A stretch of 63,075 bases of DNA, counting the filler, from Olpidium bornovanus S191 (Eukaryota > Fungi > Olpidiomycota), in assembly GCA_017911155.1 (NCBI GenBank). It is 27 parts of 27 records of this genome, joined end to end, with 100 filler letters (N's around TTAATTAATTAA, not from the genome) between each part and the next. Parts side by side here need not be neighbours in the genome. Positions count along the whole stretch, not along the records: positions 49,102 to 55,531 come from JAEFCI010011233.1; 26 more parts are not named here. One strand, 5' to 3'. Positions 49,102 to 55,631 of this stretch are shown here, piece after piece (within the stretch, counting starts at the first letter, position 1; the number at the start of each line of letters is the position of its first letter). The notes under the pieces were generated by a model. That model was not told where the DNA came from, ran no database searches, and was given only the letters and a program-made list of their open reading frames with translations. Both the position numbers and the translations under genes were made by a program.

Positions 49102-50100
49102 CATGCCGCCGACCGGAGCCCACTGGCCCTTCTTGACCGACTCCTGGATACGGGCCCAGACCTTGGGGTAGTTGTCGCGGACCCACTCGTACTGCTGGGC
49201 CTGGGAGCAGGCGAAGATGAAGTCGTCGTACTCGTCGGCGAGCGAGGTGACGTTGGAGAAGGTGCGGGACGTCTTGCGCTTGGTCTCGCGGATCGGCCAG
49301 AGCCAGGCGGAGTCGATGTGGGCGTGGCCGACGCCGGAAATCGTGTGCGCGCTGGCGTGCGCGGGGCTGGACAGCACCGGCTCGAGCGCCTCGCGGACGG
49401 CGGTGGTCGAGCCGGAGACGTCGTCCAGGTCGAGCAGGTCCATCGCCCGGTCCAGGGCGTGGGCGATCTCGTGCCGGCGCGGGTCGTGCTCGCCGAGCTC
49501 CAGCATCAGCTCGCGCAGCACCTGCACATCGAGGTCGAGGTGCCAGACCTCCTTGTCGAAAACGGCGATGTCGGCGGCGCGGAAGGTGTAGAGGGGCTTG
49601 TCGCCCGCGGTGAGCTTGTCGCCGAGGGGCGTGGGCCTGGAGAAGTCGTTCGCGAGGATGTCCGGGTTGGAGGCGGCCTCGACCAGGTAGTCGACCGTTT
49701 CGCCGCGGGCGGGGTTGGCGATCGCCACGTACTGGTTGAGCGGGTTGACGGCCTTCAGCGGGGTGCCGTCGGTGCGGTGGACGAGGACCTCGGCCTGGTT
49801 GCCGGGCCAGTCGCCGGTGAAGCCGAGGTCGACGACGGCCTCGACGCGCTTTCCGGCCCACTCGGCGGGCACCTGTCCGCGCATGCGGAACCAGGTGGTG
49901 CCCCAGGGCGGCCCCCACGGGGTGCCCATCGAGAACGGCTCGTAGGACGCGGCGGCGGCCTCCTCGAACGGGACCGGCTCCCCGGGGGCCTGCCAAGCGT
50001 CGACCTCGAAGGGGACGGTGGCCGCGTAGACGGCGGTTTTGATGCGCTGGTCGTGAAGGCGCTGCACGCGCCCCTCGATGCGGCGGCTTTCGTCGTGCAT
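49102..50100 (-). CDS. Actinobacterial (Streptomyces-type) GH38 alpha-mannosidase, N-terminal part
   Basis: MHDESRRIEGR start, PWGPPWGTTWF, GHAHIDSAWLWP and FACSQAQQY...WAPVGGM; intronless; nearly all third codon positions G/C; GGAG ribosome-binding site upstream. Confidence 0.93.
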
Positions 50101-50160
50101 GGGATGTCTCCAGGAAGCGGGGAAGAGCGAGCAGGCGGGAAACGGCCCGGGGAAAGCGGG

Positions 50161-50174
50161 GGAAAGCGCTTACC
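50161..50174. promoter_or_regulatory. Possible LacI-family operator between the GH4 and GH38 genes
   Basis: Imperfect palindrome GGAAAGCGCTTACC with the central AAGCGCTT core typical of LacI-family sites. Confidence 0.35.
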
Positions 50175-50183
50175 GATCGGCGT

Positions 50184-51505
50184 TCACCTAAGGTACGCCA
50201 GCCCGGGATGGACGTCGGAGTAGCCCTCCACCAGCCTGCGGTCCACGTTGACGGAATCGACCAGCGGATGCAGGGTGAAGGCCTTGACGGCACTCGCGCG
50301 CGAACCGGAGTCGGCGGCGGCCAGCACCTCGCGCTCGACCGCCTTGACCGCGCAGACCAGGCCGGTGGCGTGGCCGGGCAGCGGGTCGACGGTGACGGGG
50401 TGGGCGCCGTTGGCGTCGACGAGGCAGGGGACCTCGATGACGGCCTCGGCGTCCAGGACCGACAGCGTGCGCCGGTTGCGGACGTTGAGGATCAGGGTGG
50501 TGCGCTCGTCCCGGGCGATGGCCCGCATCAGGGCGAGGGCCACCTTCTCGTAGCCGCCGGACAGGTCGTCCTCGTCGCGTTCACCGGCGCCCGCGGTCTC
50601 CCGGTTCTCGGCCATGTACGTGGCCTCGCGCTCGGCACGGGTGCGGTCCCAGACCATGAGGGCGGGGGCGTGCGTGTTCCTCATCTCGGCATAGAAGCGG
50701 GCCTGCTGGTCGTGCAGGAAGGCGCCGCGGGTCTTCTCGGCCCCGCGGTTGAAGTAGTAGTAGTGCAGGTATTCGTTGGGGATCGCGCCCAGGGAGCGCA
50801 GCCAGTCGGCGCCGAAGAACTTGCCCTCCTCGTACGAGCCGAGCAGGTCGGGGTCGGCGAGCAGCCGCGGCAGTTCGTCACGCCCGGCGACGCGCAGACC
50901 GCGCACCCAGCCGAGGTGGTTGAGGCGCCGACGTAGTCGATCCACGCCTCGCCCGGGTTCTTGACACCGAGCACCCGGGCGATACGGGGGCCGAGGCCGA
51001 CCGGGGAGTCGCAGATGCCGATGACGCGGTCGCCGAGGTGGCGGGACATGGCCTCGGTGACCAGTCCGGCGGGGTTGGTGAAGTTGATGACCCAGGCGTC
51101 GGGGGCGAGCCGGGCCACCCGCCGCGCGATGCCGACGGCGACTGGGACCGTGCGCAGGCCGTAGGCGATGCCGCCCGCGCCGACCGTCTCCTGGCCCAGC
51201 ACGCCCTCGGCCAGGGCCACGCGTTCGTCGTTCGCGCGTCCTTCCAGGCCGCCGACGCGGATCGCGGAGAACACGAAGTCGGCGCCGCGCAGGGCCTCGT
51301 CGAGGTCGGTGGTTGCGCTCACCTCGGGTGCGTCGGGGACGCCGGCCGCCTGCTCGGCGAGGACGCGTGTCACCGCCGACAGCCTTCCGGCGTCCAGGTC
51401 GTGCAGGACGACCCGGGTCACCCGGCCCTCGGCGTGGTCCTGGAGGAGTGCTCCGTACACCAGTGGCACGCGGAATCCCCCGCCGCCCAGAATCGTCAGC
51501 TTCAC
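50184..51505 (-). pseudogene. Streptomyces-type GH4 6-phospho-beta-glucosidase with a frameshift
   Basis: GTG start with GGAGG RBS; LTILGGGGFR, GQETVGAGG, INFTNPAG and GICDSP. The frame breaks at about 50925 (GTC GGC GC CTC AAC CAC, 2 extra nt) and resumes as LNHLGW...PNEYLHYYY...VIEVPCLV. Confidence 0.9.
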
Positions 51506-51589
51506 CTGGTTCCTCCGATTCGGCAGGCGGTGCGCACCGCGTCGGGAGAACGGGCCACGCGCCACCTCCTTGGACTCGCTTCAAGGCCG

Positions 51590-52591
51590 CCGGGCCGCCA
51601 CCGGGTCTTCCTGCCGGAGAAGCGGACCGATGCCCGGGGCGTCACCTGGGGCAACGGCACCCCGCGCGGCACCTCGCTGCCCCTGTCGCGCTTCTACGTC
51701 GCCAAGCCCGGCGTCTCGGCCGCCACACTCAACCAGGCCCTCGCCCAGGGACTCCACCTGCTGCTGACGCCGGGGATCTACCCCCTCGACCAGCCGGTGC
51801 GCGTCGACCGGACGGGCACGGTGGTGCTGGGCTTGGGATACGCCACGCTCATCCCTGACAACGGCGTCACCGCGCTGCAGGTCGCCGACGTCGATGGCGT
51901 ACGCCTGGCCGGGTTCCTCGTCGACGCCGGGCCGGTCAACTCCGCCACCCTGCTGGAGATCGGCCCGCGCGGCGCCTGGCGCGACCACTCCGCCAACCCC
52001 ACGACCGTCCAGGACGTGTTCGTCCGCATCGGCGGGGCGGGCCCGGGCAAGGCCACCACCAGCATGGTCGTCAACAGCCGGCACACCATCGTCGACCACA
52101 CCTAGGTCTGGCGCGCCGACCACGGCGACGGCGTCGGCTGGGAGACCAACCGCGCGGACTACGGCGTCGTCGTCAACGGCCACGACGTACTGGCGACCGG
52201 GCTGTTCGTGGAGCACTTCAACAAGTACGACGTGCAGTGGTTCGGCGAGCGCGGCCGCACGATCTTCTACCAGAACGAGAAGGCGTACGACGCCCCGAAC
52301 CAGGCCGCGATCCAGAACGGCTCCCTCAAGGGCTATGCCGCCTACCGGGTCGGGGACGGTGTCACCACCCACGAGGGCTGGGGCCTGGGCAGCTACTGCT
52401 ACTACAACGTCGATCCGACCGTCGTGCAGCACCACGGCTTCGCCGCGCCGAACCGGCCGGGAGTGCGCTTCCACGACCTGCTCGTGGTCTCGCTGGGCGG
52501 CAACGGGCAGTACGAGCGGGTCATCAACGACACGGGGTCGCCCACGTCGGGGACGTCCACGGTGCCCTCGACGGTGGTGTCGTACCCGTAG
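51590..52591 (+). pseudogene. C-terminal half of a Streptomyces-type GH55 exo-beta-1,3-glucanase, 5'-truncated, with a nonsense codon
   Basis: LHLLLTPGIY, VVLGLGYATL, VQDVFVRIGG, DHT*VWRADHG (TAG at 52103-52105 where W is expected), VEHFNKY, IFYQNEKAYD and GWGLGSYCYYNV. Confidence 0.85.
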
Positions 52592-52612
52592 CCCTCGAGT
52601 CGGAGCCGCATC

Positions 52613-52648
52613 GCGTGCCCCCTCCCTTCGGGTGAGGGAGGGGCACGC
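52613..52648. terminator. GC-rich stem-loop downstream of the GH55 fragment (actinobacterial terminator-like)
   Basis: Arms gcgtgccccctccct and agggaggggcacgc (one bulged C) around a 7-nt loop. Confidence 0.6.
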
Positions 52649-52654
52649 CCCGTG

Positions 52655-52876
52655 CGCCACCGCGGACGCCCGGCGAAGAGTCCCGGCGTGGTCGGTGCGA
52701 ACGCCTCGGCCGGGACGGCGAGCATACGCTCCGCCCCCTCGGCGCGGGAGCGCACCTCCGCGGCGGGCAGCGAGCCCTTCCAGCCCACGTAGGTGTCGAC
52801 GAGGAGCAGGGTCCGCACGAGGTCGGCGTGGTGCCGGTACAGCTCCAGCACGACCGTCCCGCCCCAGGAGGCGCCA
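52655..52876 (-). pseudogene. Internal fragment of a Streptomyces-type alpha/beta hydrolase
   Basis: Nucleophile elbow GASWGGTVVLELYRHH...LLLVDTYVGWKGSLP; truncated at both ends. Confidence 0.75.
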
Positions 52877-52924
52877 AATGGACATGACGCCACACACGAC
52901 GCAAACCGTCTTCCGGCGCCGGCG

Positions 52925-52989
52925 CCAGGAAGGAAGGAACGAAGGAAGGAGAGATGGAAGGAAGGAAGGAAGGACGAAGGACGGAGGGT

Positions 52990-53024
<35 letters not shown>

Positions 53025-53240
53025 TCTGCTGGCCGCAAACGCCCCGCGCTAGCGCCAGGAAGGAAGGATGGATGGATGGAAGGATGGATGGAAGGATGGA
53101 TGGAAGGAAGGAAGGAAGGAGGGAAGAAAGGAGGGATTGGGCAACGCAGCAAACCGCAACACCTGCCCCCGTCGCCCGAGGCAGGCTGAAGAAAAGGATG
53201 GAATGAGGGAGAAAAGGAAGGAAGGAGGGAGGAAAGGAAA
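52925..53240. repeat. (GGAA)/(GGAT) microsatellite blocks with a poly-G tract
   Basis: Three purine-rich blocks, each preceded by a gcaaac-containing unit about 110-135 nt apart. Confidence 0.85.
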
Positions 53241-53249
53241 GTCGGACAA

Positions 53250-53446
53250 TATTGACGATTGACAATGGACGATTGACAATTGACAATTGACCATTGACAA
53301 TTGACAATTGACCATTGACAATTGACAATTGACCATTGACCATTGACAATTGACAATTGACAACTGACCATTGACAATTGACAATTGACAACTGACCATT
53401 GACAATTGACAATTGACAACTGACCATTGACAATTGACAATTGACT
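53250..53446. repeat. Heptamer tandem array (ATTGACA/ATTGACC variants), about 28 units
   Basis: Continuous 7-nt period over about 195 nt. Confidence 0.95.
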
Positions 53447-53458
53447 ACGCCAAATTCA

Positions 53459-53580
53459 TCCCCGGCGGTCGCGTCCGTCCCCGGCGTTCGCGTCCGTCCC
53501 CCGGCCTTGGCGGTTGCGTCCGTCCCCCGGCCTTGGCGGTGTGCCCATGGCGGCCATGGCGGCCATGGCCCCATGGCGGC
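53459..53580. repeat. Short GC-rich tandem repeats (about 21-24-nt ccccggc...gcgtccgtc units; 9-nt catggcggc units)
   Basis: Three to four copies of each are visible. Confidence 0.75.
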
Positions 53581-53889
53581 TATGCCGGCTTGACCTGATG
53601 TGTGAACTTCCCTTCTGGCTCTACCTTTTGCTGTGGCTGCGTTTGTAGTCACACTTTCCGGCACAAGGCATTGGCGCTGTTACAGAAAGGGAGCAGTAAA
53701 GGGAAAGAGCAAGATCCTTCAACCAGAGACCCGGGGTCTGCCCTATTCGTGTCGCTTAATTGCGTTTCAACTCATCTTCCTTTTGGCCATGAACATACCA
53801 TCTTTATTTGCGATCAGCGCATCTTCTTTTTTTGCGATGAGCGTTTTTTTGGCAATGGGCCACATGTACACATCTTCTTTTTTTGAGGA

Positions 53890-55405
53890 ACATTCTGACG
53901 CAGAATTTGACGGAGATTCTCACTTAAAATTTGACGGAGATTTAGACGCAGAATGTGATGGAGATTCTGACGGAGAACGTGACGGGGACGCTGATGCAAA
54001 ATCTGATGGGGATTCTGACGCAGAATCTGATGGGAGCTTTGACGCAAAATCTGATGGGGATTCTGACGCATAAGCTGACGGGGATTCTGACTCAGAACCT
54101 GATGCACCTCTTATTTTTTACGGAAGATGCAGACTCAGAATCCGACGAGATCTTGACCAGAGTCAGAAGGAAATTCTGAAGCCGAATCTGATGGGGATTG
54201 TGACGCAGAATCTGGAGGGGATTTTGAGGCAGAATCTAACGGGAATTCTGTCGCATTCTGAGAGAATGATTCTGACTGGGATTCTGATGCCAAATCTGAC
54301 GAGGATTCTGACACCAAATCTGATGGGGATTCTGACATCAAATCTGACGGGGATTCTGTCGCAAGGATTCTGATGCAGAATCTGAGGGGATTCTAAGGCA
54401 GAATCAGACGGGGATTCTGAGGCAGAATCTGACGGAAATTCTGGCGCATAAGAGAGGAGGATTAGAGGCCTGCCTGACCTACAAATTCTCAAGCAGAATC
54501 TGACGGATGGGACCATTTTCTTTTTTTTTCAGGAAGATTCAGACGCAGCATTCAACAGAGATCCTGATCAGAGCTTACAGAAATTTTGAAGCAGAATTTG
54601 ATGGGGATTTTGATACGGAACCTGGCAGAGATTCTGAAAGAATGATTCTGATGGGAGGTCTGATTCTGATTCTGACGGGGATCCTGAAGCAGAATATGAT
54701 GAGGATTCTGACGCAAAATCAGGGGAAGATTCTGCCACAGAATCTTAAGGGGATTTTGACGCAGTATCTGGAGGGGATTCGGACCAGAATTGGAGGGGAT
54801 TTTGACGCAGAATCAGAAGGAGATTTTGATGGAAAATTTGACGGGGATTCTGATGCATAATCAGACGGAGATTCTGAGGGAATGATTCTGACAGGATTTT
54901 TGAGTCTGATTTTGACGGACAGTCTACAATGGGAATCCTAAAGCAAAATATGATAGTGATTCTGACACGAAATCTGACCGGGATTTTAGCGCAAATTCTG
55001 AAGGGGATTCAGACGCAAAATCTGGAGGGGATTTAGACCAGAATTTGGAGGGGATTCTGACGCAGAATCAGATGGGGATTCTGAAGCAAAATCCGATGGG
55101 GATTCTGATGCAGAATCTGACAGAGATTCTGAGGGAATGATTCTGACAATATTACTGAGTCTGGTTCTGACAAGGATCGAAGCAAAATCTGGTGTGGATT
55201 CTGCTGCCGAATCTGACGTGGACTCTGACGCAAAATCTTGCAGAGATTTTGACGCAGATGCTGGAACAAAATCAGATGGAGATTCCGAGGAAAAAGATTC
55301 TGAAAAAGATTCCGATGCAGAATCTGACGGGGAGTCTAACACAGAATCTGACCGAGGTTCAGAGGGAATGTTTCTGATGGGGATTCTGACTCTGAATCTG
55401 AAGGG
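53890..55405 (+). repeat. Degenerate 12/24-nt tandem array (approx. gattctgacgcagaatctgacggg) reading as DSDAESDG
   Basis: About 1.5 kb of in-phase variants interrupted by indels; short ORFs translate as Ser/Asp-rich repeats. Confidence 0.9.
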
Positions 55406-55408
55406 TAT

Positions 55409-55476
55409 TCTATCATAGTCCAGGTAGTCAAATTTGCTCCTGCAAGAGCAAATTTGACTACCTGGACTATGATAGA
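55409..55476. repeat. Perfect 31-bp inverted repeat with 6-nt loop
   Basis: 55409-55439 tctatcatagtccaggtagtcaaatttgctc is the exact reverse complement of 55446-55476. Confidence 0.95.
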
Positions 55477-55631
55477 GTAAGCCTAGTCAGGTATGTATCC
55501 ATCCTACCTGCCAGGTAGCGCGGCTGATACANNNNNNNNNNNNNNNNNNNNNNNNNNNNNNNNNNNNNNNNNNNNTTAATTAATTAANNNNNNNNNNNNN
55601 NNNNNNNNNNNNNNNNNNNNNNNNNNNNNNN

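Follow-up and report, generated by a model that had tools for sequence, protein, structure and literature searches.

A mosaic of damaged Streptomyces gene fragments adjoining eukaryote-style satellite DNA in an Olpidium bornovanus contig, with chimeric joins as the favoured reading

Non-functional bacterial insertions are known in eukaryotic nuclear genomes, for example the Wolbachia fragments found in insects and nematodes. With insertions of this type the locus described here shares a rearranged mosaic, promoterless gene pieces, adjoining repeats and inactivating mutations, but it differs from them in having no measurable signature of neutral decay, and in being known here from sequence alone. 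Time and again, bacterial genes found in eukaryote assemblies have turned out to be contaminants, the tardigrade case being one example (10.1101/033464). In chimeras made by MDA, nearby segments of a single molecule are mostly joined in inverted orientation, with 2–21 nt of complementarity, and polymerase template switching produces both deletions between direct repeats and short-overlap joins (PMC1855051). The locus resembles the false HGT cases (10.1101/033464; PMC1855051) in presenting bacterial DNA of normal bacterial composition on a short contig assembled for a eukaryote, and it resembles amplification chimeras in a short overlap at one junction and a small deletion between direct repeats. 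Unlike MDA chimeras, however, it joins three unlinked loci and the DNA of a second organism, and its genes carry lesions.

The window analysed is a stretch of 63,075 nt from O. bornovanus S191, in which positions 49102–55531 are a single 6.4-kb contig (JAEFCI010011233.1). The left 3.8 kb of this contig (49102–52875) is Streptomyces DNA in three segments: segment A (2.5 kb, 49102–51599) holds an N-terminal fragment of GH38 and GH4, segment B (1.06 kb, 51600–52663) the last 55% of GH55 and a 3' flank with a hairpin, and segment C (0.21 kb) 215 nt from the interior of an alpha/beta hydrolase gene. Pfam, PDB and Streptomyces homologues all bear out the four bacterial coding fragments first recognized in a preliminary description. 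The continuity that it reported also holds, as 49102–55531 contains no N letters and the Streptomyces part runs uninterrupted into satellite arrays. At one end the contig breaks off within unique GH38 sequence, and at the other it finishes in satellite DNA and a palindrome. All segments are closest to the S. massasporeus/luteogriseus group (93–98% amino acid identity), and the left 3.8 kb is best explained as ordinary chromosomal DNA from a strain of that group. A near-identical intact Streptomyces match, which the preliminary description had listed as evidence against its own integration reading, was looked for; no such genome was found among the relatives searched with GH38, GH4, GH55 and the hydrolase, and an exact-match look-up of the GH38 fragment returned no record. 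The genes are ordinary Streptomyces sugar-utilisation genes, which cannot work in this contig because each is truncated or broken.

Segment A corresponds to the Streptomyces locus with the order DeoR regulator, GH4, GH38. Gene order and intergenic DNA match those of six Streptomyces loci (L001–L006) and of the annotated plasmid NZ_CP108024, and GH38–GH4 is syntenic with Streptomyces loci at 88–92% nucleotide identity as far as about 51596. Compared with this locus, the contig lacks the regulator, because the locus stops some 90 nt upstream of GH4; its GH38 runs off the end of the contig, and its GH4 has a frameshift and a seven-codon deletion. The GH38 alpha-mannosidase is represented by its first 333 codons (49102–50100, minus strand; PF01074, E 7e-29), which have no internal stop, are 91–93% identical in amino acids to L001–L006, and comprise the N-terminal catalytic domain over profile positions 1–81 of 270 up to the contig edge. 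Three nucleotides are deleted at about 49709, inside a variable stretch. The GH4 6-phospho-beta-glucosidase (50184–51508, minus strand) retains both of its domains, the N-terminal NAD-binding domain (PF02056) and the C-terminal domain (PF11975), with E values of about 3e-43 for each, which are not in a single open frame. The 2-nt frameshift previously noticed is a GC duplication within 50926–50929, and GH4 also has a 21-nt in-frame loss at 50744/50745, which removes seven conserved codons. This block is present in all six aligned close relatives, where the site is flanked by AGGCCG direct repeats. GH4 is therefore a pseudogene, its frame broken by the additional 2 nt and seven conserved codons lost. 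Identity to its relatives P0241–P0246 is 97% for the N-terminal part and 92% for the C-terminal part. The GTG start is preceded by GGAGG, and the leader and upstream intergenic DNA (51509–51599, minus strand, by alignment) close the segment, with homology to the intergenic DNA of L002 and L004 extending to about 51596.

Segment B carries codons ~272–600 of 600 of a GH55 exo-beta-1,3-glucanase (51600–52591, plus strand; PDB 4TZ1/4PEW, E 1.5e-77), that is, residues ~272–600 of a two-lobed beta-helix of about 600 aa. Against SacteLam55A, the GH55 exo-beta-1,3-glucanase of Streptomyces sp. SirexAA-E (4PEW, 4TZ1), positions 51599–52102 align to chain residues 220–387; in comparison with that enzyme, the contig has neither the N-terminal half, nor a signal peptide, nor a promoter, and a conserved Trp codon reads TAG. 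This nonsense change from TGG, seen in the first reading of the sequence, was confirmed at 52103–52105 against three GH55 loci. There are no indels in the GH55 part, which is 96–98% identical in amino acids to full-length homologues from S. massasporeus, S. luteogriseus and Streptomyces sp. NPDC059696, and 95.5% in nucleotides over the coding part. The terminator proposed after GH55 survives in part: alignment to relatives shows that the 3' flank (52592–52663, plus strand) holds a GC-rich hairpin (about 52611–52648) kept in those relatives, but the hairpin has no T tract and no consensus terminator was found. A scan for consensus promoters and terminators found nothing, as is expected in Streptomyces. 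The segment ends 1–4 nt into the site at which, in the relatives, a convergent EF-G-like gene has its stop.

Segment C (52664–52875, minus strand) encodes residues 91–161 of a 263-aa alpha/beta-fold hydrolase, assigned by homology and by a weak match to Pfam PF00561. The nucleophile elbow GASWG is retained, start and end are both missing, and the piece thus falls short of the complete fold (G-x-S-x-G within about 260 aa). It is 94% identical in amino acids to P0121 from Streptomyces sp. NPDC059696 and 93% to P0124 from S. massasporeus.

The truncation junctions that had been placed near 51570–51590, 52650 and 52877 are real features of the sequence, at somewhat different positions. J1 lies at 51599/51600, J2 at about 52660–52663, and J3 at 52875/52876; all are sharp, those of segment C being placed at the protein level, and GH55 homology is confined to 51600–52663. 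Neither GH55 nor the hydrolase occurs near GH38–GH4 in any of 80 loci (flanks up to ±10 kb each), and neither GH4 nor the hydrolase occurs near GH55 in the three GH55 loci. The three segments are unlinked in all relatives checked (>8–10 kb apart), and there are therefore three breakpoints inside 1.3 kb. Neither J1 nor J2 was seen in any relative examined, no IS element or repeat was found at J1, J2 or J3, and an overlap of 2–4 nt is possible at J2. We rejected a low-complexity (simple de Bruijn) mis-join, as J1–J3 all lie in unique sequence. An origin by restriction and ligation was also discarded: it is the join that produces the CCGCGG at J2, a site that the DNA of the GH55 relatives lacks, its absence on the hydrolase side being deduced from protein-level codons only.

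Decay in a methylating eukaryotic genome, as the preliminary description proposed, is not supported by the substitution pattern, which is bacterial. On the terminal branch leading to the contig, scored over 773 codons with 41 Streptomyces as controls, nonsynonymous and synonymous changes number 34 and 55 (ratio 0.62), against a control median of 0.49 (range 0.16–1.03), with eight of the 41 controls at or above this value. Codon position 3 takes 65% of the changes, and GC3 is at the normal Streptomyces level (0.946 in segment A, 0.964 in GH55). Mutagenesis by RIP or CpG deamination was rejected, as C>T is not enriched at CpG (8/23 versus a 42% background) or at CpA (2/23 versus 13%). The individual replacements first noticed, QAEVLV (A at this site in 43/44 orthologs), FTLHP (A218T) and DTYVGW (A30V), are all genuine. 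The statement that the changes are mostly C>T or G>A is correct for window-only replacements at conserved sites, of which there are about 12–14 across the pieces (8/14), but not for all changes on the branch (31/89, 35%; controls 9–48%). The contexts of these eight are CpC (three), CpT (two), CpG (two) and CpA (one), six having been computed and two, for the stop in GH55 and the change in the hydrolase, read by hand from the sequence. The conserved-site excess is clear only in GH4, where five window-only residues fall in columns conserved at ≥98%, compared with 0–1 in isolation-matched controls; in GH55 and the hydrolase the level is close to that of the controls. The proposed check by dN/dS and mutation spectrum therefore places the branch within the Streptomyces controls, but three inactivating lesions and a small conserved-site excess remain.

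Sequence has no power to tell joins made in a cell from joins made in a test tube. We favour an amplification or library chimera of contaminant DNA (probability about 0.5), and infer that the joins are most likely artefacts. Three fragments from separate loci would most likely have been linked together, and attached to host-type repeats, outside any living genome, the likely route being template switching or fragment ligation during amplification or library making of contaminating or associated bacterial DNA, and the joined product would then have been assembled as one short contig. This is supported by a lineage that behaves like that of a living Streptomyces in its ratio of changes, their codon positions, GC3 and lack of context bias, by the crowding of three breakpoints between loci that are unlinked in relatives, and by a short contig that ends in unique GH38 and in satellite and palindrome. 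The 21-nt deletion between AGGCCG repeats and the overlap at J2 point the same way, as template switching yields both. However, an intact contaminant would not be expected to combine a frameshift, the loss of conserved codons and a nonsense change within the only two long pieces of genes, nor to have the five GH4 residues, and an error rate of roughly 0.3–0.4% is not that of high-fidelity amplification. The union of three unlinked loci with a second organism's DNA departs from the intramolecular inverted joins of MDA, a simple de Bruijn mis-join is unlikely where no junction is of low complexity, and a three-fragment mosaic would not be expected of an intact, well-covered contaminant, a point in favour of the integration reading. 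If the joins are artefactual, the assembly should be cleared of this contig, which also warns that "damaged" bacterial genes beside host repeats do not prove transfer.

That integration reading is a possible but less likely alternative. Streptomyces fragments would have been end-joined at a break in repeat-rich eukaryotic (reportedly fungal) DNA, non-functional on arrival and with decay begun; the contig may then represent a eukaryotic chromosome with a recent dead-on-arrival insertion, put together from three or more pieces of a single shattered Streptomyces genome, sited in a region rich in satellites and now in early decay. Foreign DNA captured by end joining usually looks as it does here, where three unlinked fragments meet at sharp junctions with no more than 2–4 nt of overlap, and the N-free run into satellite arrays and the failure to find a near-identical Streptomyces genome in our searches are consistent with this. 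The three lesions and the window-only replacements, eight of them C>T or G>A, would fit an estimated 0.3–0.4% or so of random mutation over normal bacterial divergence. Yet the branch has no detectable relaxation, GC3 is unchanged, CpG-methylation and RIP contexts are absent, the conserved-site excess is clear in GH4 only, the flanking DNA matches no organism in the collections searched, and past experience of such contigs points to artefact. If the joins are real, they would show directly, as is rarely possible, raw bacterial DNA that is not under selection arriving in a eukaryotic genome as a mosaic of several fragments, the step preceding any functional gene transfer. Streptomyces chromosomes are prone to rearrangement, and J1, J2 and the lesions could be native to a Streptomyces, in a pseudogene patch rearranged by illegitimate recombination or end joining, with J3 alone chimeric. 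The fully bacterial substitution pattern and the single clade to which all segments point agree with such an origin, and decay centred on GH4 (five conserved-site changes, a deletion and a frameshift), with GH55 and the hydrolase near normal, is consistent with an older pseudogene carried by a living genome. We nevertheless regard it as improbable: three breakpoints fall inside 1.3 kb and none of them has an IS element or a repeat, neither J1 nor J2 is seen in relatives, two pseudogenes among few sampled genes are unlikely for a free-living strain, and J3 still demands an artefact.

The right half of the contig is satellite and microsatellite DNA of eukaryotic style, with no match in any collection searched. 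No Pfam family was above threshold, Rfam matches were all far below the gathering score and caused by the tandem repeats, plasmids gave no match, a satellite 20-mer scanned against metagenomes produced a single chance match, and a viral scan gave Ser/Asp-repeat look-alikes only. An identification as human DNA was not accepted. Tandem Repeats Finder and the sequence itself delimit, with no strand assigned, (GGAA)n/(GGAT)n microsatellites (52876–53240), whose GC-rich spacers have a common "gcaaac" core and which include a G36 run at 52986–53021, and an (ATTGACA) x 28 minisatellite with a degenerate left edge (53251–53445). Tandem Repeats Finder further reports short tandem repeats that are rich in GC and whose periods are 19, 26 and 9 nt (53446–53600, unstranded). 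Most of the remainder is a diverged 24-nt satellite (53892–55400, also unstranded) with a consensus near GATTCTGACGCAGAATCTGACGGG, a higher-order periodicity, about 44% GC and numerous stops in every frame. Near the contig end lies a palindrome (55406–55479, unstranded) with 37-nt arms that are 95% complementary and have no spacer.

The contig at 49102-55531 contains zero N letters and has two compositional halves, with 67–75% GC at 49102-52875 followed by a fall via 65% to ~44%; the GC-rich bacterial half runs continuously into repeat DNA, as proposed in the preliminary description. The four coding fragments named there are all present in the GC-rich half. These are the first 333 codons of a GH38 alpha-mannosidase (PF01074, minus strand), cut by the contig edge at 49102; a GH4 6-phospho-beta-glucosidase with both Pfam domains (50184-51508, minus strand); a GH55 fragment (51600-52591, plus strand), which corresponds to codons ~272–600 of full-length Streptomyces homologues and matches the structurally solved exo-beta-1,3-glucanase SacteLam55A from residues 220–387 onward (E 1.5e-77); and an internal piece of an alpha/beta-fold hydrolase (52664-52875, minus strand), identified from protein homologues and covering residues 91–161 of 263 aa, GASWG included.

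Segment A (GH38-GH4) is syntenic with Streptomyces loci at 88–92% nucleotide identity, and its homology, which takes in a portion of the intergenic DNA upstream in two such loci (L002, from Streptomyces sp. NPDC126510, and L004), ends at ~51596. Homology of segment B to the GH55 loci of S. massasporeus and S. luteogriseus begins exactly at 51600 and reaches ~52663 through the gene and a conserved hairpin, stopping 1–4 nt into a convergent EF-G-like gene of these species, while hydrolase homology (segment C) spans ~52661-52664 to 52875. In 80 GH38-GH4 loci, each taken with as much as ±10 kb of flanking DNA, neither GH55 nor this hydrolase occurs, and GH4 and the hydrolase are absent from all three GH55 loci. 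The homology limits, together with the separate location of these genes in relatives, therefore place three sharp breakpoints within 1.3 kb, at 51599|51600, ~52660-52663 (where 2–4 nt of overlap are permitted) and 52875|52876.

The segments end near likely transcript ends: A ends at 51597, ~89 nt upstream of the start codon of GH4, and B (52660-52663) 12–15 nt past the hairpin that follows GH55. The placement may be accidental, or may point to RNA or cDNA templates in the formation of the mosaic. The B–C join creates a CCGCGG (SacII) site at 52660-52665, absent from the DNA of GH55 relatives and, as deduced from protein-level codons only, from the hydrolase side; in DNA this rich in GC, we take it to be coincidental.

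The reported lesions are real. The 2-nt frameshift in GH4 is a GC duplication within 50926-50929 relative to six close relatives, all of which also keep a 21-nt block deleted at 50744|50745 between AGGCCG direct repeats. GH55 has no indels and carries TAG where three of three relatives have TGG. QAEVLV, FTLHP and DTYVGW are likewise genuine single replacements in otherwise almost invariant columns. At columns at least 98% conserved, GH4 has five window-only residues (0–1 in equally isolated controls); at conserved columns, GH55 has two (controls ~1), the hydrolase one and GH38 three to four. The excess of such replacements is small, and with the three lesions would fit ~0.3–0.4% random mutation over normal divergence, a figure that is our estimate rather than a measurement.

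It had been argued from the mutation pattern that this DNA is decaying in a methylating eukaryotic genome, an argument that fails against terminal-branch changes reconstructed for 773 GH38 and GH4 codons on a 42-taxon tree with 41 Streptomyces controls. The nonsynonymous to synonymous ratio of the window (34:55, 0.62) lies within the control range (median 0.49, range 0.16–1.03; 8/41 at or above the window), as does its share of C>T plus G>A (35%; median 22%, range 9–48%). Codon position 3 takes 65% of changes. Segment A has a GC3 of 0.946 (controls 0.926–0.981) and GH55 one of 0.964. C>T changes are not enriched at CpG (8/23 versus 42% background) or at CpA (2/23 versus 13%), so neither a methylation nor a RIP argument holds. 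Eight conserved-site C>T/G>A changes fall at CpC (3), CpT (2), CpG (2) and CpA (1); six of these contexts were computed, and those of the GH55 stop codon and of the change in the hydrolase were read by hand. The divergence of the Streptomyces-derived DNA is therefore of the ordinary bacterial kind.

The best protein matches of all three segments fall in one group (S. massasporeus, S. luteogriseus and Streptomyces sp. NPDC059696): 97% to S. luteogriseus and metagenome proteins and 96% to S. massasporeus for the N part of GH4, 96–98% to S. massasporeus and NPDC059696 for GH55, and 94% to NPDC059696 and 93% to S. massasporeus for the hydrolase. Affinities are not fully uniform, however, since NPDC126510, the top match of the GH4 N part at 97.9% aa, reaches only 88% in GH55 (P0108). 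This may reflect separate histories or sources of segments A and B, or a signal blurred by Streptomyces recombination. A near-identical donor genome was not found; segment A reaches at most ~92% nucleotide identity and the coding part of GH55 95.5%. Many ENA and Logan assembly contigs carry near-identical GH55 and GH4 proteins of the S. luteogriseus type (P0011-P0045, P0241, P0259), in clusters of up to 505 members and up to 35 contigs, which indicates that a strain of this group is frequent in public sequencing runs.

An amplification or ligation chimera, to which we assign a probability of about 0.5, accounts for the mosaic structure, the short length of the contig, a pattern of substitution that is bacterial and the deletion between direct repeats. 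The point lesions fit it poorly, and MDA chimeras are typically intramolecular and inverted (PMC1855051), unlike the mosaic here. A true end-joined insertion would explain the mosaic and the lesions together and is contradicted by no result; however, its positive support goes no further than these two features, and claims of bacterial insertions have a poor record (10.1101/033464). We consider it a tentative second choice. A native Streptomyces remnant patch with one chimeric join appears improbable. Two simpler accounts fall short: a living, well-covered contaminant leaves the three joins and three lesions unexplained, and a de Bruijn mis-join fails to account for junctions that lie in unique sequence.

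The repeat half (52876-55531) is, by the look of its sequence, eukaryotic in style; a human origin was not accepted. It comprises (GGAA)n/(GGAT)n arrays whose GC-rich spacers are related to each other, a G36 tract, an (ATTGACA)28 array, GC-rich tandem repeats of 9–26 nt, ~300 nt of unique sequence and a diverged 24-nt satellite that shows higher-order structure. Long open frames are absent, and Pfam, Rfam and the metagenome, viral and plasmid collections gave no family match or relative. Long GATTCTGA-type repeats on a viral contig from IMG/VR (L085:800-6700) are 65–84% like the satellite over short stretches, but most likely represent a Ser/Asp-repeat coding region with convergent low complexity rather than a homologue. 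A near-perfect palindrome with 37-nt arms and no spacer lies at 55406-55479, with the contig end 50 nt away. It is unlike any sequencing adaptor known to us, and could be an element that forms hairpins or the cause of the contig stopping there.
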